Shown piece by piece: positions 5,398 to 35,900 of a stretch of DNA of 64,000 nt. The stretch spans positions 558,001-622,000 of the forward strand of contig CDRNST010000002.1 in the NCBI GenBank assembly GCA_977016875.1, written 5' to 3'. This stretch comes from Pavona decussata. Lineage: Eukaryota. Within the stretch, counting starts at the first letter, position 1, and each line of letters opens with the position of its first letter. The notes beneath the pieces are model-generated. The model was not told where the DNA came from and did no database searches. It worked only from the letters and a program-made list of their open reading frames with translations. A program made the translations under genes and the position numbers.

Positions 5398-8300
5398 CGC
5401 GTCTAACAGAAACAAAACGCATACATTACGAGAGAGAACAGTACAGTCCAGCACGTTAACTCTTGATCACATACATCTTACTCAGCTTAGCGACTTACAC
5501 GATTTTCGCTTCACGCTCTGTGACCTCGTCTCACAAATAAGCGGACGATTAATATGTAGAGTTAGTGATCTTTGGTCGATGTTTGTTCGCTAATGTAAAC
5601 TAATGAAAATCCCAGTGCCATAACCCCACGCCAAGATTTATACAATAGCTCTGAATGGACGAGTTACAAAGTTTGACAGGGTCGCTTATCAGAGGTTTAG
5701 CGGACCTCAAGGCGCTGTTTGTGTCAGGGAATCTCTGGCTGACAATATAATGATTACTGACTCTATTATTACGCTGTCGCGATCAAACAGGGCGCGAAAC
5801 AATAGGGAAATGATACACAAATCGCACTGGAGACTAAGTAAAGGGACTTCATGCATATTCACCGCTTGTCGGTTAGAAATGCAATCAAGCGTGAAACATG
5901 AATCAAGGCTCTTAGCACATGATTAGGAGCACTTTTATTGCGATATATTAACACTGAACGTGAAGGGTATCTTTATAAATAATTTATCCTGATAGGAGTT
6001 TAAAAAAAGCTATTTGAATTCCAAGCATTTCCATGACAGCAACGAATCATCTTAATAGGATTGCGACAAGTCTACACTGAACCACACAACCGACTGAACG
6101 TGCGGTAAATACGATAAGTTATCCATCAGTCATTTAACGCATTAACAAGACATTCAAGAGGTGCCAATCAATCTAAAAAAGGATATCAAAAGAGAGAGCG
6201 TTGAACGGTAAATACCAATTTTACAGCACTTGCTTTTATAATTACATATGGAGGCAACTTTACAATACTAATTTTACTCATTTTGAACTCTATTGCTGAC
6301 CTTCACAGCTTCAATTGACTTCATTTCTTGATAATGATGTTAGCTCTTACATCGAAACGGTTTAATTTTTGTATCAGTCTAGGCAAGCGCTTTTCTGAAT
6401 CAACGATGATTCGAACTTTTGCTGTATTCAGTAAAACTGCAATTATCACCCAAAGAGGAACACAAGGGACGTGACCTCGTCACTTATTGCGGTCGTGAGG
6501 CTATTTAAATGCTTTCATGCAGCCCTGCTGCGCACAGGTCCCCTTTGAAGTTTCATTGAAAACCAAAAGGAAATATTATAAATAGCAAAACAAGTCATAT
6601 TCGTTTGGTTATTTTGAACAAGGGTTTTGCTTCTGTTGCCATTATTACGAAACAAATTGACGGGTAGCTCAGTCAACGTTTCCTGAAAATATCACTTGAT
6701 GTGTTTTTGTTTGAACTGCAGTTTCCCTCCCGGAAATACTAAAAGAAACATCGTATTTGACCTACTTTCCATATAAAAGGGTTCATTTGCTTTGTTCGCA
6801 TTCCAAAAACTACATGGCTTTACAAAGTTAGATAGTAATAATCTTTACAAACGAAACTGCATGGTAGTTGAATTCAACAAAGTGACCTAACTTCTTGCGA
6901 TGTTTGCAAGTTTTCGCTGCCGCGCGGTTCTGATTCCCGCTCAAAAATAGCCCTGCCACTCAGTTCATTGCCAGAATATTCACGACATTATATTGTTCAG
7001 CGTTTATTAATAAGTGAATCAATCTCCCTTGCACATAGGTGTGAAAATTTACCCTTTCAATTCCACAGTCAGTGAAACTTCCTCTGGTGTAGTACTGTGC
7101 TGCCTTTTGAGTCCGTGCCGCATAAAAGTGTGAGCATCGAACTAAAAGCTTGTGAGCAGTATTTGTTGATCCTGTTTGTTTGGGGTTTTTTACGTATATT
7201 GTATGCAAAATTAATTTTCTATTTTTATTCGCTTTTATTTTGGTCGTTTTTGAGATGAAAGAGTTAATAATTGCCATGGATTCTTGGTTCCTTCTGAGTG
7301 TTACGCCGTAGGGCTTTCTGTGGTCTGACGCACCCAACTCCTTTTCTTTCACGCCAGTGTTGTAATGAATGACTACTTAAAGAGGAAGTGTGACAAGCAT
7401 TTCGGTCTTTGTTTGTGAAAATGGTGGAGCAATCCGTTCACTCAATAAGAAAATTCTAGAACACCAAGATAAAGAAAGCAACTGAAATTCTTGAATGAGG
7501 AGGAAAGCATGATCTAGTGCATTTTCAAAACCAAAATGTGAGAACTTGAAAATATTAGGTTAAGTTTTTCACATGTCAGAGTCTTCACATGAGTTATCAT
7601 TGCTGAGTAGCCAACAGTTCCATGTGAATAAACCAAATTAGTGCCGGTAGTCACGACTTTTTCTCTCCGCGGTTCCCAATAGCTGAAAATATATTTTCCT
7701 TTTTCTTTTTAACACACTGAAGACATCTGTAGAAAGAAGGTGTAAAAGAGGTAAAGAAAACTTTGACAAATGCTTTCAATAAATGGTTGTACATAGGCAA
7801 CACACTATTCCCTGAAATATCCATTCCTTTCAAGAACGACAGTGTATGTATTGAGTATACTGTGACTGGAAGATTTGATAGTCCTTTTTTAAATTGATTT
7901 GTAGTTCTAATCGGAATTTTGTGCCATGGCAGAAATTTAGGCTAAAATCAAAGTGGCCGGTTTAGCTTCATTCAACTCTGACGCGTCAGCAAGGATCACA
8001 AGCTGTATCCTAACGTTTATAGGTGAAAAATGCCATGGGAAAAAAGGTATGAGAATTTCACGTGAACTTTGCTTGTACTTTGAGCAAATTCCTTTGGATT
8101 CTGAATGGATTCTTAGGACCGGATTTTTTTTGGCTAAGTCTAAATGTGTAATATATGATTTTTTTGGCACTGTTTACAGTAGATCACCTTTAACCATACA
8201 GCCGGGTTAGCCACTGACGTTGAAGTCGGTTTAGCTAGGCCGCTGAGGGTTGCGAGGTCAATGGTTAAACCCCACCGGACTGAAACCCATTTAAATAACC

Positions 8301-9993: not shown

Positions 9994-10187
9994 CTGACTC
10001 GTCCCCAGTCATCTCTCTTGGTCGAGAGGAGAGAGGTGCGCATAGGGAAAGATGGGAAGGAGGAAGAAGGGGGAGACGTCGTCTCTCTTTTCTCTCTTCC
10101 TTCTTCCCGTCGTCCCCTTCGTTGCGTTGCCGTCCTAGTCTCCTCTCGGCCGTGCGATATCATAAGAGACGACTGGGGACAAGTTAG
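9994..10187. mobile_element. MITE; related degenerate copy at ~8801-8900
   Basis: TIRs CTGACTCGTCCCCAGTCATCTCT / AGAGACGACTGGGGACAAGTTAG. Confidence 0.65.
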
Positions 10188-13100
10188 GGTTAAATGCTTG
10201 ATCGCGTCGATTCAGCGTCATACCCTCTCTCCCTCCCTACACAAGACAAGTATGTGCTCTCCCTCCCCTCCCCCCGGAATTTTCACTTTGTAAATGTCTG
10301 CCTTTGACAAGACATGACAGTTCTTAAATTATTGATTTGACATTTCCATTTATCCATCCTCATAATGCGCTTATAAAGTCGGTATTAGTCTCCAAAAAAA
10401 TCGAAAAGATTAAAGGTTCAGACGGTACGCTTAAATGAAAGCGTTGGAAAAAAATAGAGGACTAAAATAAACAAATTTCTGCAATGTTTTTCTTATCTTG
10501 CAGGAAGAAGCAGCAGATTGCTTTACGCATATTTGTTTGTTTTAGCATGAGCCCTGGCTAATTATTTAATGGATGGCGTAATTGCACATACATCCGTGAG
10601 TGCGGCAAAAAGTTTATCTCAATCACAGAGATAAGGGGTATTCATGCGAGCATCAGCCATGCTCAAAAGTAAACACTCATCGTCCAATCTTGTTAGCGGC
10701 TGAGGTGAAGTAGGGTCTTATATCATGTTACAATGTCGGACGACATATTTCAGCGTTGTATTCAACGAGGTATTTGCGCTAACAAGGTCCTAAAATAAAA
10801 TTTTGTCAGCTCTTTAGTCACGACGCATCAATCGGGCGAGACATCAAGTATTCGAATTACCCTGCACTGCTGCTAACTAGACAGAATGCTCTGTGAAGAG
10901 TTATAACGCGTAAGTGATGAATTATTTGGTAATGTACCCGTTACATTTCATGGTAAACTATTTCCCAAGGTCTCAAATTAAAACTCCTCAATATTTAGAA
11001 TAAGTTACTATTTAAACACTGAGACACTTATGAATTGAATCTCGTAAGCAAATTTGCTCGGTTGATGCGATTTGAGGGAGTTGTATAAAGGGATAAACAA
11101 TCTTCGAAAGCCGTGTGATTGTAATGCATATAAACAAGGTTGAATTAGCCAATGGTGTAGAGAAATTAGGAATACGAGATAATCAATTGTCCTTTGATCC
11201 AATGCACGAAAATAACCATTAACTGAATTTTCTTACCAATAATGTGCTGCTTCTTCCTTTGCACTGCCTCCTGGTAGGTGTTTCTAGTTTGACTAAATAC
11301 GTGAGGAGTAGAGTGCTTTGACCCTTGATAGCACACAGTCAAAATAAAATGAATTTAGCGTGATTAGTCCGCGAATATCTTTGGCACGATTCGGAGATCT
11401 TGTCTCGAGACAATTAACACATCTTTTGTGTCGGAACTTGGCTCATTTTTCAGCCTTTCAAGACCACACTCAATGAACCGAAATCATTTAACCATTTCAA
11501 CCAACAAAAAACACTACAAACTGTCCAAACATAACAAAAACCTCGTTCTCATTATCGCTCTTGGTTTCAATGCTGTATTTACTAAATAGGGCTAAATAAA
11601 TAAAGTTTGTTTGCCCCTTTGGGCGGGGCGCTGCTCTCGTGGGGTTGTTATCTATAAACCAAACTAGACAGCTGCTGTCAGGTACACATTCCAACAGAAA
11701 AATGAATACCTGTTTATTGAAGTCTTATCACTGTGTTATCAGAAGGCAGCTTTGATAACAAGTCAACCGATCTCCGACCAAGCAACAGATCACAAGAAAC
11801 TGTCCAGACTGTCAACCTTCTACCTTTGTAATAATTAATGAAAAGGCAGTGTAACAAAAAATTTGGGATTTTGGACCAAAAAGACCTGCACACTCTCTCG
11901 AATGTACTTCCCCTTGTAGCCGAGAAAGAGATCAGTTTCGCTCCGATAACCTCCACTGCTCATGATTAATCGGATTTTGGCTCGTTTTGAAGCTGCAACA
12001 TAACATTGTAATCAAACCGTCAAATCCAAAGATATGAAGAAACCTTCGTATTGGCCAAACAGTGAACCGGGTGACATAGCGTCACTGATATTATCGCTTT
12101 CATTGATCTGTGCTAAATTTAATTCTCGTTGAAGGCTTTTATTACGATATGTGTGTGCAGTTTTGATATAGAACTTTTGGATGTACCGTTGTAGTAAGAT
12201 TTCTGCAGTTACCCAGGTTTTTACACTTCATTTCGCGATGAAGCCTCTGCGATAGAAGTGAAAGTTCTGAATTTAAAACCTTTTTCTCCGAAGAAAAGAA
12301 TTGGCACACGTTAATTTACATTTCGGAGATAAGAATGGATATATTTTGCCGCTAAAATCTAGGTTTTTGTTTAAGCACAATTTAAGTTTTTCGACTAAGT
12401 AAGTAATTTTCCAATTGTTTTCAAAGGAGCCTTTTTTCAATTTTTTAAAAACTTACACATTAGCTCGATTTCACGACTACAAACTAACCCACAAATTAGC
12501 CGGCTGTTTCTCTTTTAATATTACGCCAACTTTTAAATTTGTTTTAGTTAAACTGTTTTGCCTGGTTTAAACACAAAGATTATAACAAATCATTGATAAC
12601 ACAGAAAATTCTAGAAATAAATAAAATTACAGATAACAACATCCAAAAGCTGAAAAGATGGAAGCCTGAAACACAAATCTTCCTCAAGCATGCGCGATGC
12701 AGCTTTTCCATTTCCCCAAGAAGGGGTTAGCAGGAACAGAAGTCGTGCTATTGATATCCGTATTAATAAGTATTTATGGCTTAGGTTAACAGCAACATGT
12801 CTTCGTGTTTTTTGGTGATAGCATTCTTGTTCTTATCTCTTTGAGAGAGGTCGGACTTAAGACGCAATTTCCTGTTCATATTCGCCCGGGTGTGACAGTA
12901 AAAGTAGTGGAGTTAGGATAATTTGCTTAGATGGCGTTCACCGATAGCGGAGCTAACTGACATACTCGTAATTGCATTACCTACTCGTAGAACGAAACTT
13001 TCAATGCCTGTACACATGTGATATAGAGAATATCGATAGAATACTTAATTCTCCATGTTTGCCGCTTGTTTGTGTTGATTGGTAGAAGATCTGCAACACT

Positions 13101-16100: not shown

Positions 16101-18390
16101 AAATAGTAGTTTACTCGTGCTAGCCATAAAAGGTATGGTAATTCAGCGGCTTTGCGGTCTATAATAGAGTCTAGATCGTCACGTACCATCTTGACCTAAA
16201 ATAGTTTATGATCTATACATGTTTTGTCCACCGGTCTGAACTGAATAGGAAACACATTTTTAACGTCTTCGCCTAAAGAAGTAAGAAATAATATATTTGG
16301 TCTAAAAGAGGAATAGGATATCAAGCTTTCGGCCACCCCCTGCGGCACACCTCTCCCCTCCCCCCTCTGCTTTTCGGCCAACTGAAGAACTGAGAACTGC
16401 ACACCGAGTACTTGGACTAATAAGGTTTGTCCGTCTACGTCATGAGGACGTCCATACTGGACGTCAATCTTAGCACGCGAAAGGCCAAGTGAAAACCTAA
16501 AAATTTAGGGGACCCTCACAGAAAATTACATTCTTGTAATCTATTTAGGTATTATAACAAAGAGAAAAATGCATTTCGCTTTTGTGGTGCATGTAAGTGT
16601 GGTTTTCTTCAAATGGAACAAAGACAAGAGAAAACAAAGTACTTGTCTAACTGCTTAAAACACTCCACACGGTATTTCAGGAATGTCTAATTCATTCGCC
16701 AGCAAGTCTAGAACCACGATTTTATCAAAATCTTACTTGAATATTGCCTGGCTGATAAAAGACTCAACTACGAATGTATTACGTGAAGATTGTTCTTAAA
16801 ATGTCATGGCTATGATAGGTATAGAGTTTTGAAAAAACCGATGCCATGGAGGAAATTGGTCGATATGCTTGATAAGACTACCTAGGCAAGCGTTAAAGTC
16901 CAATATTAATTCGCTTATTATCATGTGTCTGTAAGGAAACAAGAATAACTATCAGATTACGTCCGATCTTTTTTAGATGTACTGACAACAATAATATAAC
17001 TCATTAGCTGGGAAGCTGAGAGGATATTTCCCTGCGCATGAGGTTTGGGAACATTTGTGTCGTTACGTGCTCAGAATGAAAAGAAATTAGAGACAACATA
17101 CGCAGTGTTTACATGGCTCTACAGATGATGCCATATCGCAAATAATTATTCCATGATAAAGAAGCTCAATCAGGAAACCGGCAAAGTTTTCCGCCTTTCT
17201 CGTTGAGGTCTTTCAGTGTACAGCTCTACCAGCCGTTTTGTATTCTCAAATAGCACATTAGTGTTGAGAGAAAAGAGGTATTCAGTGACTTACTTGCAGA
17301 ATGTGTTGACTTTGTCTATATATAGCAACCAGTAGTCTGTTTTTGACCTCTCCAAATGCGACACTGAGATGCAAATAAAACGGAGCGTTGATTTTTCCTC
17401 ACTACGATCCGAATTGTCGGAGAGGTGTTCCCGCAGAGAGAGGCATGTAGGCGGGTGCCTGCTTTTATATGTCCGTGCTTTCCACCCATTAGTCTCCCCC
17501 ACGCAAATTAACGCAATTAATTGATAAAGGCGGCTAATTTAGCAAGTGTACCCTATTATTAATCTCATAGTACGAGTGTCTCTGTCACTATGACTACATG
17601 AAAAAAAAAAAAAAGCTTGATCATGTTTTTTTCTGTCTCTGTCTGTTGATTAGTGTTTGTAAACTACAAAACCAACACAGTCGACGCAATTGATGTAAGT
17701 TCCCGTGAAAACGTACACCTGACACAAACCGGGCTAAAATCGAAAGAAGCTATGGTCACTTGTCATACTAGTTTTAATCCACATTTCAGTACGATTAACA
17801 TTAAAGATATTGTTTGTTTTCGTGGGCAAACTTTGAAATATTTGCATCCTAGTGCATGTGGAGGTGTCGTTGAAAACTTTACTGATAAAAAACTGATATA
17901 CGTCGGTGAAAATGTTTCAAACCTATCATGATACCTTAAAACTCAAAGGTTGTTGTAAAACTGACATCCGCTGCCCTGTCTCGTGTTTTTCGCCGCGTCA
18001 CTTTCCTGCGTCTTTATACTCAATATTGACCAATATTTTGTTCTTGACGTGGGTGGTAAACAATCTTTCTTTTGAGGCGGTTTTGTGCTTCATTTTCAGT
18101 TGCAAACGCTTGAAAGTGCCGCTTTGTCAGAAACTGTTTTCGGTGAGCTGGTAATGCATGCTGACACATTCCTCACTCTCACAATTTGGATTAACATTAA
18201 GATGGCAAGCAGACACCGACAATCCATCGGTATCTTTACTTCACCTCTTCCGTCTCGTCAGTTTCCAGAGCCCGCGTTACACTAGTCTGCAGTTCACTTA
18301 CAGAGCTCATGCCCAGAATCAGGGGAATTGAAAATCAACCATATCGGGAACAAGAGCCGAGCTTTCATTTGAATGCTCACAGTGGCGTTA

Positions 18391-20365
18391 GGGCCTCTTC
18401 ATGAGCCTGGTCAACTGAACGGGAATGGCCGGTTTCCAAGGTCTCTCAGTCAACTTTATAGCTACTTCTCCTGTAAACATTCCGATGTGTTCATGTGAGA
18501 ACTCGGGTTATACCGGAGATCTCGGGTTTTGCGACCGAGATCTCAGAAGCCAGGCTGGAAATCTTTTCCATATGAATTCGAAATTCCCAGCCCGATTACC
18601 GAGACGACTCAAAACGGCTCGCCAATAAAAGTCTTGACTTCGAGGCGGAGAAAAGAACCGCGAATGGAGATATGTCAAAACTGAATATAGATTATATTTT
18701 CATGCGGGCGACCTGTGGCTGCTTCATAGCTGCCGGGTGATTTTGACAAACTTTCAAAGGGAATGAAGGCAAAAGCGAATCAATATGGCTTTCGAAAAAA
18801 TCGCTCTCCTAGCCTTGCGCTTGTCGATTTGTGTGACAAAATTTCTTCTGCATTTGATAGAAAAGAACACGCCATTGGAGTATTCCTAGATCTTTCGAAA
18901 GCGTTCGACACGGCAAATCACGACATTCTTTTTGAAAAACTCAATCATTATGGGATCCGTGGTCTGGCACTAGAATGGGTCAAAAGTTATTTTTCCGAGA
19001 GGACACAATTTGTCGAATTTAATAACGTTAGATCTGCCCCACAGGGGATTTCCTGTGGGGTGCCTCAAGGTTCTATTCTTGGTCCCTTATTTTTTATCCT
19101 GTACGTTAATGATTTGAACAATGCTTCCCTGCTTGATGCAATCTTGTTTACTGATGATACAAACCTATTTATCTCCCATAATGAACCTGTTTACCTAATT
19201 AACACATTAAATAGAGAATTAAACAAATTGTCAACCTGGTTTGCAGCAAACCGGCTCTCCTTGAATTTAGCCAAGACTAATTTTATTGTATTCAAGCCTT
19301 GGCAAAAGAAGCAATCCTTTGAATTTCAAGTTTTCATAAGTGAGCAGCCTATCCTTCGTGTTTCTGAGACCATGTTTTTGGGTGTTTTATCAGATGACAA
19401 TTTGACCTGGAAATCTCATATAACCTTAACAGCAAATAAATTATCCAAATCTATAGGTATTATTCATAAATCTAGGTTTTTTTCTCTCTACTCACTCCCT
19501 TCGTACTTTGTACAATTCTATGATCCTTCCATATTTATATTATTGCAATTTAGCTTGGGCTGGTACCTATAAGTCAAACCTTCAAAGAATTGTAACCTTA
19601 CAGAAACGTGCGTTAAGAATAGTAAGCAATTCCACATACATTGCCCATACTGGCCCTATCTTTAAGCAACTTAAACTCTTAAAATTTCATGATATCCATT
19701 CGTTTCAATTAGGTATTTTTATGTTCTCCTTCAAGAACTCTACACTCCCTTCCAAATTCAATAACTTTTTTTTACTGAATAGTCAAATCCATAATTACAA
19801 TACTAGGAATGCTCAGTCCTTCCGCTTACCACTGTGCAGAACGAACTCCAGGAAGTTTTCAAATTACTTTCAAGGTCCAAACTTTTATAATTCGCTAAAT
19901 TCTGACATAACTAGTTCTCCCTCCTCCGCTTCTTTTAAAAGAAAGCTTAAAGAATTTCTTCTTTCTATAGGTATTAACTTCTGTAAGGCTGTAATTCTTA
20001 ACTAACTTACTTAATATGTGTGTGTGCGTGTGTGTGTACGTGTGCGCGGTCAAAGTTAATTACCATAAGTCCATATTGTAATTCTAATATAAGATTAGTT
20101 GTTTTAAGTGAGGAAGCCTGACTTGTTATAAGCCTCGTGGTTTCTTTCAGGTTTTCTCGCCATTTATTTTCTTATATCAAGTTTCTTCATTTTTTTCCCA
20201 TCTGTTAATGTTGTGTATATGGCAAAATAAATATTGTATTGTATTGAAGGATCGCCTCTTTTTCATCTCGATAACCAGGCGGAAATTTCCCATCATGATG
20301 AACAAAGACAAACTTCGTCCCGCTGACTGGGAAAGCTTGCTTACCGGGCTCGTACTAAGAGGCCG
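18391..20365. mobile_element. PIF/Harbinger-like MITE split by the LINE insertion
   Basis: Imperfect TIRs GGGCCTCTTCATGAGCCTGGT / ACCGGGCTCGTACTAAGAGGCCG, flanked by TTA on both sides. Confidence 0.6.
18770..20244 (+). mobile_element. 5'-truncated, degenerate non-LTR retrotransposon (LINE, CR1/L2-like reverse transcriptase)
   Basis: QYGFR, FLDLSKAFDT, GVPQGSILGP motifs; catalytic motif reads FTDD; frameshift near the T-run at ~19480 splits ORFs 18763-19572 and 19508-20005; 3' end AATAAA plus (TATTG)3 tail; putative TSD TGAAGG at 18764-18769 and 20245-20250. Confidence 0.9.
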
Positions 20366-22658: not shown

Positions 22659-25600
22659 ATGACGAAAAAGTGTATTTGTCAGATCTGCACTTGCGGGTAA
22701 GTCTTTGATTTCTAAAGTGATTAGTAGAATACCCAGAGAATCCGAGTGTTCTCAAATTCCACTGCTATCGATGCGATGGCGACGTTACGATCGCGAAAAA
22801 CTCGGTGCAATCTTGAAGTTTTCCTTCTTTAGGAAGCATGCTTTGCTGTGAGATAACAAATTGTTTTGTGAGTATTACGCCTTTTATACTTTAATCGACA
22901 ACAAGAGGTTGGAAACCCATTCAAGTGCCGTTGATCTTTGTGTTTCATGGAATGGCAGATGCGTGTTCACAGAACTCGTCTTTATTCTTTTCGGTAACCA
23001 CTTTATCCGTTACCGATCCCCGTTTAGGAAAAGAAACAATCACTAAAATGCCACTGCAACATTTCCTCTTAATCTTATTCAATTTGGTTCAATTGCGAAA
23101 GCGCTTGTTTGATAAATTAAAACTTTATCGCCGCGAATTGCACACGAATGACAACTCAGCGCTATGCTTCTAATTATCTACGTGTTTAGTATTCGATTTC
23201 GGAAGTGTTCATGTTGGTATCCGAGAATCGTTTGTCGCTAAGCTTTTATTGCCCGTTCATGCAGTTGATACTGTCTGATATTTTTCCGTTTCAAGACACG
23301 AATCACTGAATTTTCGCATTGAGAACGTTAACTAAACCTATTCTTTTAAAATATTCACTTTGATGTTTGGTTGCGTGAAATTTGATTATGTTAATTTCTT
23401 GCTAGAACCGTGTTAAAAGTACAGTCATGTACCCGTTTTATTTGAAACAAAGGTTTTAAGCAGTAATTTTTTTCATGTACAATAATTTTCGTAACTTTTC
23501 CCGAGAAGAGTTATCTATAAATGTCAAACAAAAGTTGACGTAAGATTAAAAATGTTATATTTCTTTATTCCATGCCAAAATTTACATTGTTATGTTTGAT
23601 ATGATGCAGTGGGGAAATTATGAACGCAAATAGAGTTGATGTGCCATGTTAAATGGAATCTTCCTTATTTTTTCTTTCTTCTTCCTTTTGCCTTTCTCTG
23701 TTTAAAACGGGGATGAGGCCAACAAGGAATATCAAATACGACTAATTTTGGAGCTGAGACTGAACGTTCTTATAGTTTTTTTTTTGCGATTTGAGGCTGA
23801 AAACTTAAGATGTTCTTAAATTACATGGTATACACTAAATCAATGCGGCGCGACTAGGAAACCTATCAAAGTGCATTGCCTGCTGAAGTATGGTACCAAG
23901 AACTGCCGATTATGACAAACCGAGATGTGTATCACCATTGTTAATGTTAAATACAAAACATGCCCTTAAGGTAATACCCTATACCTTCAGAGTTGTCTCG
24001 CGTTTAAGCGATGTAGCGCGTCCAGTTTAAACTGTAGATACCTAAACCCCTATAACGAATTAAAGCTTATAGAGCTGGCTATTAAACTATACCAAGAATT
24101 TTGAAATAAAATGAATTGTCTAATTTTTCACGACCTCTAAATGCGAGCGTCCGAATCACCTTTTTAAAGCTACAAGTCAAAGCGAATTTTGTTTTTCGTC
24201 AATTTAATTCGCTCCTCAGTTTCCGGACCCAAAGCGCTAAAAAAACGTGTCTGCGTTTTGCCATATTCAACCGCAATGAAAAGTTATAGAGCATTTTCGA
24301 AATAGGATGGAAAAAATGTGGAGTAATCGTACAAAAATCGCTGTCGTAAGAAAAAATTCGCAGACACGTTTTTGTTGTTTATATCTTAAGCTAGCTACTG
24401 TCCGGCAAATTTGAAGGCAAACGAACAATTTCCTTTTGAGTTTTAGCTCTTTGAAGTGGCTCCACCAAGTGAAAAATTGGTTCGAGAAAACAGCGCTAAA
24501 AATTCGGCAATTCATTTTATTTCAAAATTCTTGGTTTATTTTGATAGCCAGCTCTATAAGCTTTAATTTGATATAAGGGTTCAGGTAGCTACAGTTTAAC
24601 CGGACGCGCTACATCGCTTGGACGCGAGACACCTCTGAAGGTATAGGGTTACCTTAAGTATTTTGGTTAATTTACATTTGTTACCTTGATTTTATACTGA
24701 CAGATTGGCAAAATAAAAACGTTCTTAACCAACTCTCAGCCTGAGGAATGTTCTTAATACGTTCTTAAAATTTTGGTTAATCTCAGCCTCGACGTTCTTA
24801 TAAAAAAGGTTCTGATAAAAAAAAACCAGAGTGTATTAAAACGAAATATTGACATTAGTGTTATGTTACCCGGATATTTTATTACAGTAAATTATCAATA
24901 GGCGAAATACCTTTTCTTTTTTTATGCCAAAAACCAACAGAGGAAAGTTACTTATGCCCTATTTTATCCCCAAAACGATAAAAGACAACAACAATAATTA
25001 GCAGCAATTTATTACTTTGTGAAATTAATTTAGGGAGTATTTGGGTGCTCACGTGACCACCAGGAGCGCATGCGTGTGAATTCCATGCACTCCATTAGCC
25101 TTGCTTGAGTTCAGCTTTCTTAATTTAGTACATTTATTCTTCAATAGAGATTGTTATTTGGTTTGTTACAGTATCCGGTTGTAAATAGGCAAAAACGTAA
25201 TTGCACATGCGCTAGCGTAGCTAACAGTAAATCACGCCGCCTAGACCGTGTACTTTTTTTGTTGTTGTTGTTTACATTATCTGAGCGACTTAAATTTGGG
25301 CGATTAAAAGAAATAGCACTGATAGTGCTGTTAAGCTTTCCAACATCAGCTGAAAGGTAGTGACGGTCACCAAGGCGCAAACGTCGGATTTTTGCTCAAA
25401 GCGCAGTTTAGTACGGAATCTGAGTACATTTAGCACGAATGCGTTTTATAGGAATACAGATGGGAGCACAACATGGTTCGTTTTGTAACCCATCTTGGTT
25501 TTGTGACCAAAACTGTCGTTTCTAGTTGATGTTGGCTCCTTTTTTTTGTCAACTCTTTCTACTCTGACCGACCCACCGTAAACGCAAAAGGAAATGACCT

Positions 25601-27699
25601 TAAACCATGGAAAGGACGAATTCTCGTTGCCTTATTTATCAATGCTTTACCTTCCGTGCTGGTGCATGAATCAATCTCGTTCGTTGTGGTATGCAAGCGT
25701 CTGAAACCAAGTGCTGGTGTCACTCCCTTCTCCCACGGAAATTTAGTCGTCCCAAAAGTAAGCAAATCTCAGTTATTCACAGTTCGCAGTTCTTTTATTG
25801 GCTCGAGGTTATCTTTAACAAATGAACCAGCTGCACAGAACACATTAAAACTCGAATCGATAGCATTCCCATTCAACAACATCGAAGCAGTAAACAAAAC
25901 AAAATGCCAACGTGATTCTGACGAAATCAAAATGTGCTCAAAAATAGAATCTGCAAAATATGAAATTTTTTGTCGGCATAACCCTATAGGTGTTTGCAAT
26001 CAATCGCTAGAGATCCAAAAGACAATGGTGTGGCAGCCATGTTGGATGACAGAACCTTTTGTTTTGCCATCCAACATGGCCGCCCTACCGTTGTCTTTTT
26101 GGATCTCCAGAGATTGGTTGCAAACCACCTATTCCAGATATTTAGGCGGCTGCTAATCGAGCCTACTATTCTGCGGCGCTTGCTGCTGTAGTTATTCTCG
26201 GAAAACTTTATCCCATAGATCACTCGTGTTCGTTGTCTAACCAATGCTATCCATTTATAAACAAAACCAAATGTGGTTTTGTTTCGTTGGTTGTAGAATT
26301 TAGGTATAATTTTTTTGTTAAATTCCACAGACGCCATCGTTGTCCACACGAGGGTTCAAGTCCAAACCGGATTATCAACAAGTCCAATCAGGGTCGGTGT
26401 CACGTGAACTCTGAGTACAAAACAAGCTACCAACCGGGCAAACGAACCAGGGGACCATTCCGCCGTCCAAACGACCTTCTTCACAACCAAGGAGATATAG
26501 ATAAAGACACGACCCAGAGGCTGGACTTTGTACCATTTGAGGTCAGACCTCCGAAGAAGAAGGAAGCAGAAAAATACTTGCCTAACCCAAACCCGTTTGA
26601 AACTGTATCAGAACACCGAGATCATTACCGTGGAGTGCGAACCATACCCGCTAAAATCCCTCCGTACATCCGCGGGGAGACTATGCGTGCTCCCTCAGCC
26701 AAGGTTGTGTACAAATCCATTTCGCACGACGATTACAAAGGCTGGATTCCGCAGGTTCACCGTGTCACGCGCAATGACTCCTACGCACCTCCTGAAGATC
26801 CATTTAGGGAGACGTCTATCCATCGACAGGACTACCAAAGGTTCAACCAGCCGCCACGCCCAACTGCGCGGCAGCCCGACAAGATCAGATACGAAGGTCC
26901 TGTGTCATCCAGCACCAACTACAGGGCGGACTTTAGGAACAAGGAGATACCGCCGCGATACCAGCGGAAACTGGAAGAACGCGTGCCGCCCGAAGAACCG
27001 TTCAACAGCAACTCGGTTTTCAAGGAAGATTTTGTGGATTTACGCGGCGCGCCAAAGGCTCCCATTTTTAATCCTAAAAGCGATCTGTTCAAAACCGATG
27101 AGCCCATGCAGCAGAAGACAACGAAGAATGAGGATTACAAGAGTTGGGAGGTATCGCCACGCAAGCAGCCCGAACCTGAGAAATACAAAGTACCGGATGG
27201 CGCCATGGACTGTCAGACCACCCACATGGATTACGCGCATTTCGGAAAGAAAGCTGTACCAGCCAAGACCGCTAGACCGCGCACCAAGCTGCGTTTTGGA
27301 CGAGAAGACGCACTTGATGACAAGACAAACTACGGCCTTAGCTTCAGATGGTCCTACGAGCCTGTTGTGCACTCAAAGGGTCCAGGGATCAGGAATGAAA
27401 TCTTCCCTCCGGTTCAGGAGAAGAGCGTCGAGAAGTCTGAATTTTTGGATAAGTACAAGAGATTTAACGTAGTACCCCCCAAGATGTTCCGTGACCGGAG
27501 CACGCTGTTCAAGACGTCCGAGGGAATTGCCAAGGATACGGTGTACGATGATGACTATACATGGCCCCGAATCAACTGTCCGTCGGACGCTTTGATGAAA
27601 GGCAAAGGAACGTTTACGTTTGATCACGAGACTGAAACCGGACATAAAATCTTTTCCATTGCTGAAAATTCACGCAGCACTGACATTGCAGTCGCGTAA
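22659..27699 (+). CDS. SAXO1: Stabilizer of axonemal microtubules SAXO1/SAXO2-like (FAM154), two exons, 468 aa
   Basis: Exon 22659-22696 MTKKCICQICTCG|GTAAGT spliced to 26331-27699 (ccacag|A CGC CAT) gives MTKKCICQICTCGRHRCPH, the characteristic SAXO N-terminus. Twelve ~34-aa Mn-type repeats (SEYKTSY, TTQRLDF, SEHRDHY, SISHDDY, SIHRQDY, TNYRADF, SVFKEDF, TTKNEDY, TTHMDY, TNYGLSF, SEFLDKY, TVYDDDY). SAXO1 versus SAXO2 cannot be resolved. Confidence 0.9.
23970..24653. mobile_element. Non-autonomous DNA transposon with ~150-bp TIRs and TTAA flanks (Kolobok-like) in SAXO intron
   Basis: TTAA|GGTAATACCCTATACCTTCAGAG ... CTCTGAAGGTATAGGGTTACC|TTAA with long inverted arms; GG termini rather than the CC of piggyBac. 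Confidence 0.75.
25986..26132. mobile_element. Palindromic MITE in SAXO intron
   Basis: ATAGGTGTTTGCAATCAATC...GATTGGTTGCAAACCACCTAT; whole element folds back. Confidence 0.7.
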
Positions 27700-28153
27700 C
27701 GAAAGCATGAGCGAGAAAGAGATTAATTATGTTTTCCATCGAGTTGCGAGCTTTCAAACAAATCATACATTTTGCCAGGGAATTGTTGTGCGTTTTAAAA
27801 ATGTTTCAGAATCTAATCGTTATATCCATCATTTAGTTATAGATATGAATTTGTCGGATTTTTACCTAATTTATTTTATATCGTCGAGCTTTTATCATAT
27901 ATGGTGAGCCTCTAACTTGTCTGTTATTTCAGAAATCATGAGACAACTATTTTCAGTAATGACTCAAGGGGTGATGTCATCGGAATTTTGTTACGTTTCG
28001 GTCAAAACTGCACAAAATGTATGACAAGGTTATTTTTTAAGGTTATTTGACATTGTTATTTTTCAGTGTCGCACAGTACAACTTTTCATGACTGCAAAAA
28101 TACGTTAGGGGATATAGTATTTAGCGGGCGTACATGTATAACAACACTTATTA

Positions 28154-28521
28154 AGGACCTTAAAATCGACGACGTCGACGTCATGAGAACGTCAAAGAAC
28201 AATAGGATTTATGAGCAAAACGATCGCTCTGCAGGTGTGTTATGAATTTTGGTCAATTTCTTTGTCTTCTTCTTAACAACAACATGAAATGACCAATTCC
28301 AAAGGTTTATGGAGAACATCAACACACGAAGGTAAATTTTTCATTTTATTTTTTAACTTGAACGTCACTGCCACCAGTTCAGTTCCAAGATAGTTCGGTC
28401 ACACTGTACAAGTTGAACTATTTAAATTGGAAAAATCTCGAAGAATTTCAAAGAATATAAAATCACATAATTTGTCAGTGACGTTTTTGTAGATGTTGCC
28501 GTTGTGGTTCTTGAGGTTCCT
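28154..28521. mobile_element. Degenerate MITE
   Basis: AGGACCTTAAAATCGACGACG ... GCCGTTGTGGTTCTTGAGGTTCCT imperfect TIRs. Confidence 0.5.
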
Positions 28522-30042
28522 ATTATCCAGCTGCACTTAGTGCTATTCGAATGACGCTCGAAACGAGTACAAATATGACGTGATATTCGGAAAAATAGTT
28601 ATTTTTGCTGCAAAAAACCGGTTTGGAGGTTATTCGTACAGTACAAAACCGGTTTTCTAACGCGCGCGCGCGCTCACCTTGTTTCAGTTTTTCCATATAG
28701 CTTTCTTACCAACTTATCAGAAAAGCTTAAGTTTAAATAACTGATCTCTTTCTTTAGATGTATTGGTGTGTAGTATGGCTGTATATTTTTTATCCGTTGT
28801 TTGTATTTTGACTCGTCCTGCGAGTTTGTCAATGTAAAAACAATGGGTATAGATATACAGCGATACTACCCGCCAAAACGTCTAATTAACAAATATAGAT
28901 ATTATCCTTTCGTGCGTCCCGGACACCTCTATAAAAAGGAAACACTGTTCAAAACTATTCAGCTGAAATGTTTTGGGAGTTCTTGAAATCGGACTGAGTT
29001 TATTTTCGTTATTTCTGCTTGCACTGTAAGAAAAATGGGTTTTGTACCATTAAAAGTATTTTGAATGTATGTTTCTGTGTAATCTTTTTTTTTTTTTTTT
29101 TTTTTTTTTTGGGGGGGGGGGGGGGGGCTATAAACCATCAAAGCCTTCCAAAGTGGCAAAAAAAACATTAAGTCAAAGACAGTTTAAGCTTGTACAGTTT
29201 TATTACTTGTATTTTCTTAGGCAGATAAATGTGTGTCCATAACTAATTATTTTAACTGGTCAACATTAACATTAACCGCAGGTACATTGTATTTGACTGT
29301 ATACTCTAATTTGAACTTGAATTGCCTTGGTTTGATTGAAATTGGCCTATTGATCTATAATTGATTGGCCTATAAGTGAGTGTTTTATAAGAGGATTTCG
29401 AAGACCAGTTTAAATTCCTATTCTTATTTTTATTACTTTTTCCAGTTTGTTTAGATAAATAGATCGAAATATTAAAGTTTTTTTTAGCAGAGATTGTTTG
29501 AAATCACTTTCCCGAGGCCTGTTTCTTTGTTGATGGCTTTCGTCTATCAATAAATTTCTTCAGTGAATGTAGACCAGCTATCTTTAAAATTAGAGTAAAA
29601 CAGACTTTAATACAGAATACTCTAACGTAAACTGGAACAATTTGTTTCTAAAAGTATTATCTCCTTGTATTTTCAATCGTCTTCTCAGCCTTAACAGCTT
29701 TGTGTCCACAGTAAAGCTAAAAATTCCAAGTGAAGTAGACACAAAAATATAAAAAATTTCTCTAGCGGTGCTATTCTTTTGGGATTAATATTTCAAGTAT
29801 TCGGAAAAGAATTGAAAAACCTCGAAAGAGGGTTGGTATAAAGAGCGACTTCTTTGGCTCGCATTTAAGAAAACGGAAATCCGCAGAATATTGGGCTACG
29901 GTTATTTTTGAATACGAGGAAATATCTCCCAAAAGCGCACCCTATGTGTTCTGTTAAATAAATAGAATATTTATTTTTGCAAATTTCAGGTAATTATTCA
30001 GCATATTTCTTTCAAAGTTCAGGTAATTATTCAGCATGTCTT

Positions 30043-30137
30043 TTAGCGGCACGTATTACAACACCAACGGGAATATACAGGGCACATTCCAATTTGTTTG
30101 ACTCTCTGGCAGTATTTAACTTCGTCGACGCAGTTCT
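30043..30137 (-). CDS. Giant ADAMTSL terminal exon, PLAC domain
   Basis: tttttgttttcag|ENCVDEVKYCQRVKQIGMCPVYSRWCCNTCR*. Confidence 0.92.
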
Positions 30138-32912
30138 CTGAAAACAAAAAGAAGGAAAAACTTTCAGTTTGCGTTATTTGTGATGTAGCCGGTGTAGTCT
30201 GTAAACGAAACTTAGAGAGACTTTAGTTGTGTGAGGTATGATACGAAGAGTATGGAACAATGCCTGAAACGTTACGGAGAACAATGTTCGATTACCGTCC
30301 GCAATAGTCCCTGATTTCAAAGGAACTGAACTTTTCAACTTTTAAAAATTTCGAACAGGATGCGCACTTTGAGCTCAGGAGAGCGCTCTCAAACTGAACT
30401 CAAAGCGAGTGAAAAAATTCATTACTTCGTCCGTGATTTTGAAATTGCAAGGGAGGAGAGTTTCAACCCGCATGCGCTCTGGTTTTCCGCACTGTTTCCA
30501 AGTGCTCTAGCTTTCAGTAGTTGCAAAGCTATGTAAAATCCTGGTTTACACCGTTAATGGAAGCTTTTGGCCATCCTGTTTTAAAGCAGCGTTCACGGCA
30601 TGCATCGCTAAGGTTTTAGTGACAGTTTGAGGTGAAACAAAGACAATGAAAGATCAAGGTGTATGAACAAAAATTCTCCTTTTACACCTTACGCAGAGAT
30701 GAACTGGGGAAAAGATATGGCTACAATAAGTACGTGGTATAGGAACACATGATTTGGTGACAAGGTACAACAACTTATTTCCATCAAGAACAGTAGGGAG
30801 ATGGGGGTACAGAAAAATTTTCCCCACAGAAAGCGGGTAAATTTGTTGCACCATAACTATACATACCTTCAAAAAACTAACCACTCAAGTTCTTCGATAC
30901 CTTTTCTGTTTGTTTTAGTTTTTTCTGTTACCTAACGACTTGTTTGCCAACAAACTAATTTTCCTCAAAAGCTGTAAAGATAATAACTGTCAGGGTAAAA
31001 TTTCTCATAGAAATCTCTCAAATTCCAACGATTCTTCAAAAACACAACACGATACTGTTAATTTCTTGATAAAACAGTGGAGTCAAACAACGAAAGCCAC
31101 TGCTGCCATTTTTGAATAATGTCTATAACTTGTTAAAGTGAATTCAACCTGACTTCTGATAGGATTAGCCTGTATAATTGTATCTCGAGTAGTGACGAGA
31201 GCGGGGTGTGATATTTAGTATGTTTACCAAGGGTTATATCAGGAAGCCGAAGGGCAAGCCTTACCTTTTCTACACGGCTTTCTGTTACAAGGCTCCTGCA
31301 AGGGCGGTTGTTTCAGCCATCCGCACTGACCTTTGGCCGGCTTCAAGCTTTTTGCAAAGACACACTGTAAATTACGAAGCTTAACTCCATGTGGACCGCA
31401 AGAACGGGAACACTATCAAAGAAACGAAACAAGAAAAAGTAAATGCGCGATTATAAAGGCGATTTTAAAATGGTTATTTTGTAAGTTCACTTCGTCATAC
31501 AATTGGACAACTGAACAACAAAAACAACAACAACAAAAAAGGACAAATAAGCAGACAATAGACCATTTCCGAGTTGCTTTGAACCTCATCATGAATGCGA
31601 GGTTAAGTGCAAAGTTTTTGTTACGAAAATTAGTTTTCATTCATATGCAAACAAAACTAATTTTATTATGAAAAGTTTTGCACTTAGCCTCGCTCTCATC
31701 GTGAGGTTCACAGCAACTCGGAAATGACCTATTACTGTCTCCCATTTTAAGACAGTGCTTCTTGGGGGACTAAAACTTGAGCGAAAGGTTAAACTTTAAT
31801 TTCCCGCGATACCGAAGAATTGTATCACAGCAGTGCTACGACCTCAGCGCATGTGGTTTCTGTATCATTTGACGCTCAAAAGTAGATCAAGAGGGCAGAA
31901 AGCAACATTAGGAAAAGCAAACAAACAACAACAACAACAACAACAACAAAAAACAAATAATTAGAAAAAAAAAAGAGCAAAGTCTTTTCCATCCCAAACC
32001 GGAATTTTTTGCCGAGCCTGCCTAGTACAAATTTGCTTTAAAACAAACCTACTTCACACCACATAAATCTCCTCGGCGTTAGCCTCGACTAGCGCGCGAC
32101 AGCCGCAACAATGATGGTTTAATCTTTACTTACCGCTGACCAAGCAGTTGTCCGCCAAATCACGTGACAATCTCTATGAGTACAACGCCGGCGTTTGATT
32201 GGTCTATGCTTGTGTACACAATGCAGGTCACTAACAGCCTTACCCGCCGGACCCATGCAACTTATGTGTCTTTCCTGCCAGCCTCGAAGATGCGTTACAC
32301 AGTTACCGCACTGAAAGGAAGGTAAACAGAAAGAAATCGATAAGAATATTTGAGACACTTTATTTCCTCAAACAAGCGTCTGGGGCGCTGATTTCCGGTT
32401 GTAAATTTTGCCTTTTGAACAGTAATAAACTTTAACTAAATTAACGTGCCTCAAGTTTTCAACAATTTATTGTCCGTTTCAAAAAATGTGACTTTAATTC
32501 CCTACCTCATGCATTATTTGAAAGTTATTTTCATTGGCTATATTGGTGAGGGTGTGGTGGTTATTTTAGTCTCCCTGGCAGCAAATCGAGGGTGAGCGAG
32601 TGATCAACGCGGTACGGTATCGGTCATTTAAAGGGGAAACTAAACTGGATAGTATTTTTTAAAATTTAAACGAGGAATGTAAACTTACATTGCTCCAGGC
32701 TGTTGTCTTCCAGTGCCCTAGAAAAAAAACAGAACGAAAAAGGCCTTTCAGCAGGAGAAGAGATTGTATAATGCAAATCCAGGGATTTGATTGGCTTAGC
32801 GGCCATGGTATATGAGCCAAGATCTAGCAATATTTCTTGATTATTTTCAATAAAACAATTTTTCCACTTGTGCTTGTTGGATATGAAGATGATTATAGCC
32901 AACTCGGCGCTT

Positions 32913-32952
<40 letters not shown>

Positions 32953-35900
32953 GCTCGTGGAATAATTATTAAATAGCTATAAAAAGTAGCAATGTTAGAA
33001 AATATACAAAACAAAGCAAAACAATGACTTATAAGAGAAAAACAAGTTGACAATCACTTTTTTATGTGCTTTACGAATGATTTTACGGATGCGGCAGCGT
33101 TTGACTGTCCCTATTCCAGAATAATGGTCCAGCCAAACGTAAACGAATCCACCACCGATGTGGTTCGACACTGGCCAACATTGTTGAATTCAAGTGATAC
33201 TGGAATTGCCTGGCCACTATGATTTTAATATTGCTGAACGAAGTCCCCCATAGAGGGGGGTAACGCAACTACACCGAGCTCACTTGTCTATTTTACGGTG
33301 GAAAATTAATTTGGAGATAAAATCTGAAATGAGCACTTTCTTTTGCAATGTCTTCTATGCATAATAATATTGCTTGGAATAGAGCAAGGGGAGACGTTAG
33401 TGTTGATTTATTTGCGGGCCACTAGTAAATTGAGTCGCGCTCGCGCAATAAAAAAAAGCGTCATCTAGACGTTGACCAAAGGTATCCAGCATGTTTCATC
33501 CAGCACATTTGGGAGATGTTAAATTCGTTTGACTACCCCACATAACTTCGTCCATGGACGTTGCATTAATATCTCTTTTACAGCTAGTGTCATACAGTCT
33601 TTATTAGTGCTGGAACAGCGTTAGAATTTGCACTTGTATGACACTTTCTAGTAAATAAAGATTCACAATCATTCATAAACCAAATTCGAATGATGTTGAT
33701 GATGTTGAGTTCAGTCTATACGGCCTAACATGTGTAAGATTTAATAAGGCCGATTTAGACGGTACAACTTTTGCTTACGACTGTCGCATACGATTTCTGG
33801 GTCGCGCGCTGCTCGCGTCATGCAAAAAATCGCACACAACTCTCGTTACTCAACATTGCCTATACCTACGATTTTAAAACATGTTTTAAGGGCGATTTAG
33901 ACGGTACGATTTTCTCTTACGACTGTCGCATGCGATTTCTAGAGCGCGCGCTGCTTGCGTCATGCAAAAATCGTACACAACTCTCGCCACTCAACATTGC
34001 CTTTACCTACGATTGTCGTAGGATTTTAAAACATGTTTTAAGGGCAATTTAGACGGTACGATTTTGCCTACGATTTGTCGCAAGCGATTTCTAGAGCGCG
34101 CGCTGCTTGCGTCATGTAAAAATCGTACACAACTCTCGCCACTCAACATTGCCTTTACTTACGATTGTCGTAGGATTTTAAAACATGTTTTAAGGGCGAT
34201 TTAGACGGTACGATTTTGCCTACGATTTGTCTCATGCGACACGCTTACGCCATGCCTACAACACGAATCGCGTCGTGTAAATCAACCTACAACATCCTTA
34301 CGACAGACGCACACAACACGAAAAATGTCGTAGGATTTTAAAACATGTTTTAAAATCCTACGACAATCGTAGGTAAAGGCAATGTTGAGTGACGAGAGTT
34401 GTGTACGATTTTTACATGACGCAAGCAGCGCGCGCTCTAAAAATCGCATGCGACAGTCGTAAGAGAAAATCGTACCGTCTAAATCGCCCTTTAAAATCCT
34501 ACGACATTTTTCGTGTTGTGTGCGTCTGTCGTAAGGATGTTGTAGGTTGATTTACACGACGCGATTCGTGTTGTAGGCATGGCGTATGCGTGTCGCATGC
34601 GACAAATCGTAGGCAAAATCGTACCGTCTAAATCGCCCTTTAAAATCCTACGACATTTTTCGTGTTGTGTGCGTCTGTCGTAAGGATGTTGTAGGTTGAT
34701 TTACATGACGCGGTTCGTGTTGTAGGCATGGCGTAAGCGTGTCGCATGCGACAAATCGTAGGCAAAATCGTACCGTCTAAATCGCCCTTTAAAATCCTAC
34801 GACATCTTTTGTGACGTATACGACAGTCGTAAGTGAGTTGTAGGTTTGATTTACACGAAGCAATTCGTGTCGTAGGCCTGTCGTAAGCTTCTCGCATGCG
34901 ACAAAGTTGTCTCGTATAAATCGTCCTATAGAATGGTCTCGAGCTGTCACTCGTTCACAACAGTTTTGACTACCTCCCAGCAGATAAACACGCCATACCA
35001 TGTATTACAATTCACAATGCATTAAAAGTTTTAGAATGGAGAATTTTAGTAATCATTATGTGTTTATTTATTCCGGAATAGTGCCAATCAGATCGTACGA
35101 ACCCAAAATTTCATTTCCAGTCATGCTATTCATTCAGCTGTTTATCACATGAAGATCTCACAAAACAATAACATCATAGAATAATGAACGATACTCACCG
35201 GTAGCTTCATTTTTAACAGTAAGCCTTACGGATCCTTCATCCTTCCCAACAATGTTACTCGCAATACACTTGTATTGCCCGGTCTCCTTAGTTTCAACCT
35301 GACGGACTAACAAAACACCATTCGGAAGTAACAAATGTCTACTGTCATTCTTGATCAGCTCTTCGTTCCTTCTCCATGTGATGTGAGGGCTGGGCTTTCC
35401 AACAACCGTACAGATCAATATTAGATTGTAGCCTCTTTCAACAGCGAGGGATGAAATCGTTTTCCTTTTGACCTCTGCATGAGCCATTGCATAACCCTCG
35501 ATTCGTTTTTCGTTGAAGACGTGTCGCAACTGACGGTCAAGGATTTCAGGAGGAACTGCAAAAAATAAACAAAGGCTAAAATCATTGCGTTTCTTAAAAT
35601 TACCACAAATTATGCGAATTTTCGTCCATGAGGGATGTAAGTGTCATGGCGCTAAAAAGATCGCCAAGGAGACATATCCATGAAGCCTTTATAAATCAGA
35701 GTTACAAAATGGCAAATTTTACTTTGCAAAACGGTGTCAAAGAAACAGAATCATAAGCAAGTACTGCTGACGACGTTTCACTTCAGGAATTCATCAACAG
35801 ACTAAACATTTTGAACCGACGTGTCCAGCATAATAAAGAGCACAACAGGAAAGTACTGCTCAGTTGCTAACATTTGAATGGTCACCCTTTGGCTTTCATC

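Follow-up and report, generated by a model that had tools for sequence, protein, structure and literature searches.

In the 64,000-nucleotide stretch of the stony coral Pavona decussata analysed here (positions 558,001 to 622,000 of contig CDRNST010000002.1 in a 602-Mb assembly, or C2:558001-622000; "the window"), a gene of the SAXO family and a giant gene for immunoglobulin (Ig) domains, thrombospondin repeats (TSRs) and a terminal PLAC domain lie tail-to-tail. This arrangement is not peculiar to the coral, as it recurs in a sea anemone, in a second coral-like assembly and in amphioxus, and the adjacency of the two genes probably predates the split of cnidarians and bilaterians. On balance, we regard the pair as a case of ancestral microsynteny which has been kept passively, with the giant gene as positional counterpart of the Ig-TSR-PLAC half of ADAMTSL1 and ADAMTSL3; we hold this reading with moderate confidence.

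The stop codons of the SAXO gene (27699, plus strand) and of the giant gene (30043, minus strand) face each other at a distance of 2,343 bp, and neither an open reading frame (ORF) with a family match nor a tRNA or Rfam match was found between them. The first-pass annotation of this DNA had described two convergent stops about 2.3 kb apart with no gene between; its coordinates are exact and the models of both genes are now backed by RNA. Expression was read from assembled contigs, not raw reads, of four runs from four studies, which were taken as RNA and whose contigs are spliced. In all four runs contigs start at or near the border of SAXO exon 2 (at 26330 in runs X1, X5 and X8), the letters preceding this border in contigs of X5 and X6 match SAXO exon 1, and the splice between the two exons is thus contained in the contigs. 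For the giant gene, the introns 30138-31264 and 31413-32133 are seen as RNA joints (30137 to 31265 and 31412 to 32134) which equal the predicted exon borders to the base and read CT..AC on the plus strand, that is GT..AG on the minus strand. Contigs running on from SAXO exon 2 reach 28317-28329, and 28928 in one run, while another contig extends to 28978. From the other side, contigs of the giant-gene 3′ untranslated region (UTR) tile from 30012 down to 29327, and the runs holding them, X1 and X6, also hold the joint 30137 to 31265. With the outermost contigs at 28978 and 29327, no more than about 350 nt separate the transcript ends of the two genes, both of which are expressed. The contigs are unstranded, so that an overlap of the UTRs is not judged from them and the distal part of the 3′ UTR is assigned to SAXO by inference. 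Between the two transcript ends, a homopolymer tract (about 22 T, then about 18 G; 29085-29128) falls exactly into the contig-free gap (about 29000-29320) and may explain why contigs break there.

The plus-strand gene is a two-exon, expressed member of the SAXO family. Its second exon matches the Pfam family PF05217 (SAXO1-2) over residues 34-354 with 33.6 bits at a cut-off of 26.5, and a PF05217 profile search of the whole coral genome returns the same match. The N-terminal motif C-x-C-x-x-C-x-C-G, encoded on an exon of its own and followed by HRCPH, is present, and the identical design of exon 1 with the same intron phase is found in the SAXO genes of Exaiptasia, Nematostella, Clytia and amphioxus as well as in a second coral SAXO gene treated below. 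Relatives in other assemblies share 74-87% identity with the window copy, those of Exaiptasia and Nematostella 60% and 55%, respectively. SAXO proteins are annotated as stabilisers of axonemal microtubules, and judged by this family annotation the coral protein would have a microtubule role. In two runs from different studies, 147 nt of its 3′ UTR (28330-28476) are swapped for 14 other letters, which represents an indel allele of the UTR.

The minus-strand gene has a length of at least 65 kb. With seven Ig exons of the window as queries, 56 Ig-type open frames were detected on the minus strand between window position 35161 and C2:653359; 28 Ig exons of the gene lie inside the window. The order at its 3′ end is a last I-set exon, two ADAMTS-type TSRs (PF19030, 27.2 and 33.3 bits) and the terminal domain, so that the Ig domains precede the TSRs and PLAC as they do in ADAMTSL1 and ADAMTSL3. 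We read the terminal six-cysteine domain as PLAC, a domain found in ADAMTSL1, ADAMTSL2, ADAMTSL3 and other proteins: its score against PF08686 (25.3 bits, E 2.5e-05) is slightly below the cut-off of 26.4, and its six-cysteine pattern and terminal position are kept in Exaiptasia and in the second coral-like assembly. The predicted domain content suggests a very large secreted protein of the extracellular matrix type, and the Exaiptasia counterpart is annotated with a product of 4,974 residues. The 5′ end of the coral gene lies outside the RNA-supported region. In one of its introns (31520-31919), the summed contig depth amounts to thousands in all four runs with many loose contig ends, which looks like a short repeat family carried in many transcripts. 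The features of both genes, and of two further genes discussed below, are collected in Table 1.

Table 1. Features of the convergent pair and of two other ADAMTS-like genes in P. decussata. Positions without prefix are those of the window; C2 is the contig of the window, C87 another contig and L010 a separately read locus.
Feature	Position	Strand	Basis
SAXO exon 1: start codon and Cys motif MTKKCICQICTCG, then phase-2 GT donor at 22697	22659-22696	+	Sequence, RNA contigs
SAXO exon 2: remaining coding sequence, about 455 residues, 1,369 nt	26331-27699	+	ORF, AG acceptor 26329-26330, stop 27697-27699, RNA contigs
SAXO 3′ UTR: contig ends near 28317-28329, longer form to 28928-28978	27700-28978	+	RNA contigs
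Giant gene, 3′ UTR	29327-30042	-	Contigs tile 29327-30012 in run X1, 29794-29944 in X6
Giant gene, last exon: putative PLAC ENCVDEVKYCQRVKQIGMCPVYSRWCCNTCR and stop TAA 30045-30043	30043-30137 (coding 30046-30137)	-	Sequence, PF08686, RNA joint
Giant gene, exon with body of last ADAMTS-type TSR (CSRSCG...PCRK)	31265-31412	-	PF19030 TSP1_ADAMTS 33.3 bits; both flanking introns in RNA
Giant gene, exon with body of penultimate TSR and W-motif of last TSR	32134-32310	-	PF19030 27.2 bits; RNA contigs match exon exactly
Giant gene, 29-nt exon G-HWKTTAWSN (W-x-x-x-W-S motif) joining Ig array to first TSR	32689-32717	-	Read from sequence, AG/GTAAGT borders; outside RNA contig coverage
Giant gene, last I-set Ig exon	35199-35555	-	PF07679 63.4 bits; borders read from sequence
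Giant gene, further Ig exons; array runs past the window to C2:653359	35556-64000	-	Ig-exon searches
Upstream gene, TSR1	2673-2825	-	PF00090 34.7 bits
Upstream gene, Cys-rich exons	66-230 and L010:9015-9272	-	Exon positions
Upstream gene, spacer exons	L010:8003-8383 and 6654-6875	-	ADAMTS_spacer1 41.8 bits at C2:554648-554848
Upstream gene, six further TSRs and TSR-PLAC last exon; gene reaches C2:549629	L010:1629-1961	-	PLAC 26.6 bits
Third ADAMTS-like gene: Cys-rich, spacer, about six TSRs, 558-residue Thr-rich mucin-like frame, two Ig, PLAC	C87:1959083-1974488	+	Profile searches

The neighbourhoods of SAXO genes in other species were inspected over 10 kb on each side. In Exaiptasia, a convergent gene follows directly downstream of SAXO at a distance of about 0.8 kb; the PLAC, TSR and Ig exons of the coral gene have their counterparts in its last exons. 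In the second coral-like assembly (L003), whose SAXO protein is 74% identical to that of the window, PLAC and TSR exons in convergent orientation were found about 8 kb downstream of SAXO, with an insert between the two genes that carries an ORF of a long terminal repeat retroelement (about 2 kb). Two assemblies of Branchiostoma floridae show a convergent neighbour about 2.4 kb downstream of SAXO with a product of 1,261-1,329 residues; TSP1_ADAMTS and I-set matches are on record for this product, and its 3′ exons encode four Ig domains, four TSP1_ADAMTS repeats and a PLAC domain (41.6 bits). Hence the partner is the convergent neighbour of the SAXO gene in P. decussata, Exaiptasia, the second coral-like assembly and amphioxus. 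The upstream neighbour of SAXO in B. floridae encodes a Myb/PAH protein. As the arrangement is shared by a sea anemone, a second coral-like assembly and amphioxus, it was likely inherited from the cnidarian-bilaterian ancestor, and an independent origin is very unlikely because the loci agree in orientation, in direct adjacency and in a partner with the uncommon Ig-TSR-PLAC ending.

In six named species and two further assemblies, the 10 kb on either side of SAXO yielded no PLAC, TSR or Ig exon, these absences being close-range only. Among them are Nematostella, where the window-type SAXO gene has no partner exon in this range and contains an assembly gap, the hydrozoan Clytia, the gastropod Babylonia, the annelid Dimorphilus (with 6PGD next to SAXO) and the sea urchin Diadema (with PDE8 next to it). 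The SAXO1 locus of a bird likewise shows no annotated neighbour, and the search for PLAC, TSR or Ig exons over 10 kb was negative there. The first-pass annotation had called the pair very old and had named a lack of linkage in most intermediate lineages as a refutation. Its age is supported by the tail-to-tail arrangement with an Ig...TSR-PLAC partner in Exaiptasia, the second coral-like assembly and B. floridae. Of the lineages named for inspection, the pair was seen in amphioxus and, within the 10 kb inspected, not in Nematostella, the gastropod and the annelid. Two side observations concern these loci. The gap in the Nematostella gene (L002, about 16400-16560) splits it and explains its annotation as a 'low quality protein' of 296 residues. 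In Diadema setosum, the PDE8 gene downstream of SAXO (L028, 25918-26767) may be a remnant of a larger ancient linkage group; human PDE8A presumably maps to 15q25 near ADAMTSL3 and SAXO2.

In humans, ADAMTSL1 and SAXO1 are, as we assume, convergent neighbours at 9p22, and ADAMTSL3 and SAXO2 are both taken to lie at 15q25. The vertebrate pairs resemble that of the coral in that a SAXO gene stands beside a presumably convergent gene with an Ig...TSR-PLAC ending. The coral partner differs by its roughly 56 Ig domains, by having no more than two C-terminal TSRs and by the lack of TSR1, Cys-rich and spacer domains, and the coral SAXO gene is a divergent paralogue. With this assumed human arrangement as the link, the coral pair is most likely the same as vertebrate ADAMTSL1-SAXO1. 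The linkage itself is backed by published work: a horse study lists ADAMTSL1 and SAXO1 within 500 kb of one haplotype, a buffalo study places both in one selection-signature interval, and a mouse study has Adamtsl3 and Saxo2 in one region of chromosome 7. An earlier description of the SAXO/Ig-TSR-PLAC pair was not found in the literature searched. Extended synteny with other genes from 9p22 and 15q25 was tried as well; the RagA-type and PDE8 matches of the coral lie on other contigs and, as these are contigs and not chromosomes, carry no weight.

The identity of the giant gene was examined by homology searches which used single exons as queries, so that the modules were sought exon by exon. 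E-values of short Cys-rich exons are weak. The TSR1/Cys-rich/spacer module, which defines ADAMTSL proteins, was not found along the roughly 65 kb of the gene or in the 49 kb upstream of it. In detail, PF19236 (ADAMTS_CR_3) has no match at the giant gene, the sole match of the spacer family PF05986 on contig C2 (at C2:554648) belongs to a different gene, and tblastn with the TSR1, Cys-rich and spacer exons of that neighbour returned nothing in C2:588000-702000. The fragments scanned upstream of the first Ig exon gave no Pfam match. A protease domain of the Reprolysin family (PF01421) has no match on contig C2, in accordance with an ADAMTS-like protein. Reciprocal best hits with amphioxus Ig exons against the whole coral genome were attempted as well; they were swamped by the many multi-Ig genes of the coral and gave no usable signal.

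Measured against ADAMTSL1 and ADAMTSL3 (the punctins), the giant gene is alike in the absence of a protease, in its ADAMTS-type TSRs, in the I-set Ig domains before the C-terminal TSRs and in a terminal domain read as PLAC. The punctins differ by an N-terminus that resembles the ancillary domains of ADAMTS proteins, which was not found in the giant gene, and by size: the product of the giant gene type is about three times larger, with 4,974 residues in Exaiptasia compared to about 1,700 in vertebrates. Thus, what the gene shares with ADAMTSL1/3 is, as predicted from the exons, only the C-terminal layout of Ig domains, ADAMTS-type TSRs and PLAC, and by its predicted domain content it is not a canonical ADAMTSL. 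By position, it corresponds to the amphioxus gene and probably also to the vertebrate one. The first-pass annotation had gone further and taken the pair as independent support for ADAMTSL1/3 orthology of the giant gene. The positional counterpart and the C-terminal layout speak for that claim and the missing TSR1/Cys-rich/spacer module speaks against it, so that the pair supports orthology only in a weak form.

Two other families of large matrix proteins invite comparison. Hemicentins likewise combine a long tandem array of I-set domains with subsequent thrombospondin repeats in what is presumably a secreted matrix protein. They carry nidogen G2F, EGF and fibulin modules after the TSRs. The giant gene differs from them, as it ends in PLAC directly after two TSRs with RNA-confirmed splicing, and a C-terminus of the hemicentin type was not found; upstream of the first Ig exon the scanned fragments contained no other Pfam domain, although no search was aimed at VWA, G2F or EGF. 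Papilins possess a TSR1/Cys-rich/spacer module, Kunitz domains and a PLAC domain directly after the Ig domains. As ADAMTS-like relatives with Ig domains and a terminal PLAC they resemble the giant gene, and a gene on contig C87 of the coral is nearer to the papilin layout than the giant gene is.

This C87 gene is one of two further genes of the coral with ADAMTS-like modules. The other one lies on the minus strand about 20 kb from SAXO, head-to-head with it, and has the composition of a canonical ADAMTSL-type gene, without Ig domains and without a match to a protease. Consequently, SAXO is flanked by two PLAC-ending genes, both on the minus strand. Frame-broken reverse-transcriptase ORFs resembling long interspersed nuclear elements occupy 18730-20005 (plus strand) between the ADAMTSL-type gene and SAXO. 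According to their predicted architectures, the upstream gene and the C87 gene are better matches to the designation ADAMTSL than the giant gene is, and none of these fully matches ADAMTSL1/3. A genome-wide search with PF08686, a model of only 31 positions, returned one match and missed both PLAC exons of contig C2, and therefore gives no count of PLAC-ending genes; the three coral candidates for such genes come from searches that may miss some.

The second SAXO gene of the coral is located at C226:588920-590491 (minus strand) and scores higher against PF05217 (74.6 bits) than the window copy. A retrocopy is excluded by its Cys-motif first exon, shared with the window copy, and by a short intron of about 180 bp. 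It is flanked by unrelated neighbours, a WW-domain gene and transposon ORFs. Among named species, Acropora provides the closest relative of the C226 copy, and the named relatives of the window copy are sea-anemone proteins. Nematostella and Actinostola have both types, Acropora is named for the C226 type only and Exaiptasia for the window type only; Clytia has a SAXO gene of the window type. In a tree of 83 rows, bilaterian sequences are split from all others with a support of 98 in the Shimodaira-Hasegawa-like approximate likelihood ratio test (SH-aLRT), and in a tree of 34 rows the window-type clade joins the bilaterians with a negligible support of 37. Forcing the two cnidarian clades into one lowers the log-likelihood by 0.9 units and is not rejected by the approximately unbiased (AU) test (p = 0.43). 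Since the backbone of bilaterian, C226-type and window-type sequences is not settled, sequence does not pick the paralogue that matches SAXO1/2. The gene tree, which the first-pass annotation had named as a check, accordingly leaves the match of the window copy to SAXO1/2 undecided. Position favours either the window copy or a duplication within cnidarians as the counterpart of SAXO1/2, as the window copy has the same partner as in amphioxus. In a further assembly (L024), an intronless SAXO gene (10001-11395) is followed 8 kb downstream by a second SAXO-like ORF (19378-19848), indicating a tandem duplication.

If the pair is indeed ancestral, the two genes would have been adjacent since the cnidarian-bilaterian ancestor and would have been inherited tail-to-tail. 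The 3′-to-3′ spacer, some hundred to several thousand bases long and almost wholly UTR, would offer few breakpoints that spare both genes, and slow rearrangement in the lineages keeping the pair would have added to its retention. These lineages are regarded as slowly rearranging. The coral partner would then be the counterpart of the C-terminal Ig-TSR-PLAC half of ADAMTSL1/3 with a greatly expanded Ig array. We think that retention was mostly passive, and infer this because a retroelement-bearing insert is tolerated in the second coral-like assembly and because the partner is absent within 10 kb in six lineages, both of which argue against a strong constraint.

Several observations weigh against this reading. 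Besides the lack of the defining ADAMTSL module, orthology of the partner genes is argued from position and domain order: amphioxus Ig exons match many multi-Ig genes of the coral, among which the giant gene ranks third at best, and TSR matches between coral and amphioxus are weak (best E 3e-05). The B. floridae neighbour was read at its 3′ exons only, and the human arrangement is an assumed one. The coral also offers competing candidates, namely the canonical ADAMTSL-type gene head-to-head with SAXO and the C87 gene, whose layout is papilin-like or ADAMTSL1/3-like without Kunitz domains and which is not near any SAXO gene. On the SAXO side, the window copy is the faster-evolving anthozoan paralogue, its clade sits on a long stem, and bilaterian SAXO proteins, including those of amphioxus, mollusc and annelid, score higher against the C226 copy. 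Finally, with 10 kb per side inspected, an absent partner may merely mean a longer spacer, as at the bird locus.

Alternative explanations differ in what they take the adjacency to mean. The pair might be held together by function, either as in the bystander or regulatory-block model, with regulatory elements of one gene in long introns of the other, or through 3′ ends that regulate each other via antisense transcription or shared termination. In favour of such a hold, lineages that separated more than half a billion years ago still share adjacency and orientation, the UTR ends lie within about 350 nt in the coral, and the spacers are short in Exaiptasia and amphioxus as well. Against it stand the retroelement-bearing insert in the second coral-like assembly and the missing partner in Nematostella, Clytia, Dimorphilus, Babylonia and Diadema, where 10 kb around SAXO were inspected; moreover, neither gene is a typical developmental regulator of the kind that anchors such blocks. 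By family annotation, the products also belong to unrelated compartments, the axoneme and the extracellular matrix. We consider a functional hold unlikely. The hint of a shared regulatory constraint in the first-pass annotation was not substantiated: nothing points to it, as the spacer tolerates a retroelement and the partners are no longer found close together in most of the lineages sampled. A different objection is that the relevant ADAMTSL neighbour is the upstream head-to-head gene, the giant gene being an unrelated cnidarian multi-Ig gene in which only the TSR-PLAC ending is alike. The upstream gene does have the full set of TSR1, Cys-rich and spacer domains, six further TSRs and PLAC, with no Reprolysin match on the contig, and the giant gene is without the Cys-rich/spacer module. 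Nevertheless, we judge this distinctly improbable: the amphioxus neighbour of SAXO is convergent and ends in Ig-TSR-PLAC like the giant gene, with a Myb/PAH gene upstream; the 10 kb upstream of the Exaiptasia SAXO gene yielded no ADAMTSL exons; and the upstream coral gene has no Ig domains.

Coincidence, with SAXO and a PLAC-ending gene becoming neighbours independently in cnidarians and chordates, would agree with the fact that the partners are linked by similarity at the level of domains alone and that the pair is missing in most sampled lineages between the two groups. But few genes combine I-set Ig domains, ADAMTS-type TSRs and a terminal PLAC, with three candidates in the coral, and the same neighbour in the same orientation would hardly arise twice (by our rough estimate far below 1/1,000 per lineage), so that we give this explanation very little credence. 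Ancestral microsynteny kept by passive retention thus remains the preferred reading. A more speculative extension of it, which appears rather unlikely to us, is that the Ig-TSR-PLAC half of chordate ADAMTSL1/3 derives from a separate gene, convergent with SAXO as early as the cnidarian-bilaterian ancestor, to which the TSR1/Cys-rich/spacer module was added later, corals having kept the unfused state with a strongly enlarged Ig array. The ADAMTS-like module might in this case have come from a nearby ADAMTSL-type gene like the one upstream in the coral. A simple read-through fusion would need these two minus-strand genes in the opposite order to that seen in the coral.

Hundreds of conserved microsyntenic pairs are already known in animals. 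Ancient pairs of this kind in metazoans were reportedly described by Irimia et al. in 2012 and Simakov et al. in 2013. The SAXO pair resembles them, as functionally unrelated genes are found adjacent and in the same orientation from cnidarians to chordates. In many of the known pairs, a bystander gene harbours the regulatory elements of a developmental gene, which explains the adjacency; in contrast, no such relation is evident here. The SAXO pair, though real, is a rather unremarkable example of genes that have stayed neighbours since early in animal evolution, and by itself it reveals no new mechanism. It provides one well-documented case in which adjacency and orientation were kept between cnidarians and chordates for two genes without an evident functional link. 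Beyond that, it may serve as a positional anchor for tracing the origin of the ADAMTSL1/3 (punctin) architecture, whose ADAMTS-like module and Ig-TSR-PLAC module sit in the coral in separate genes on either side of SAXO. The existence of two anthozoan SAXO paralogues matters for the assignment of SAXO1/2 orthologues in work on cnidarian cilia.

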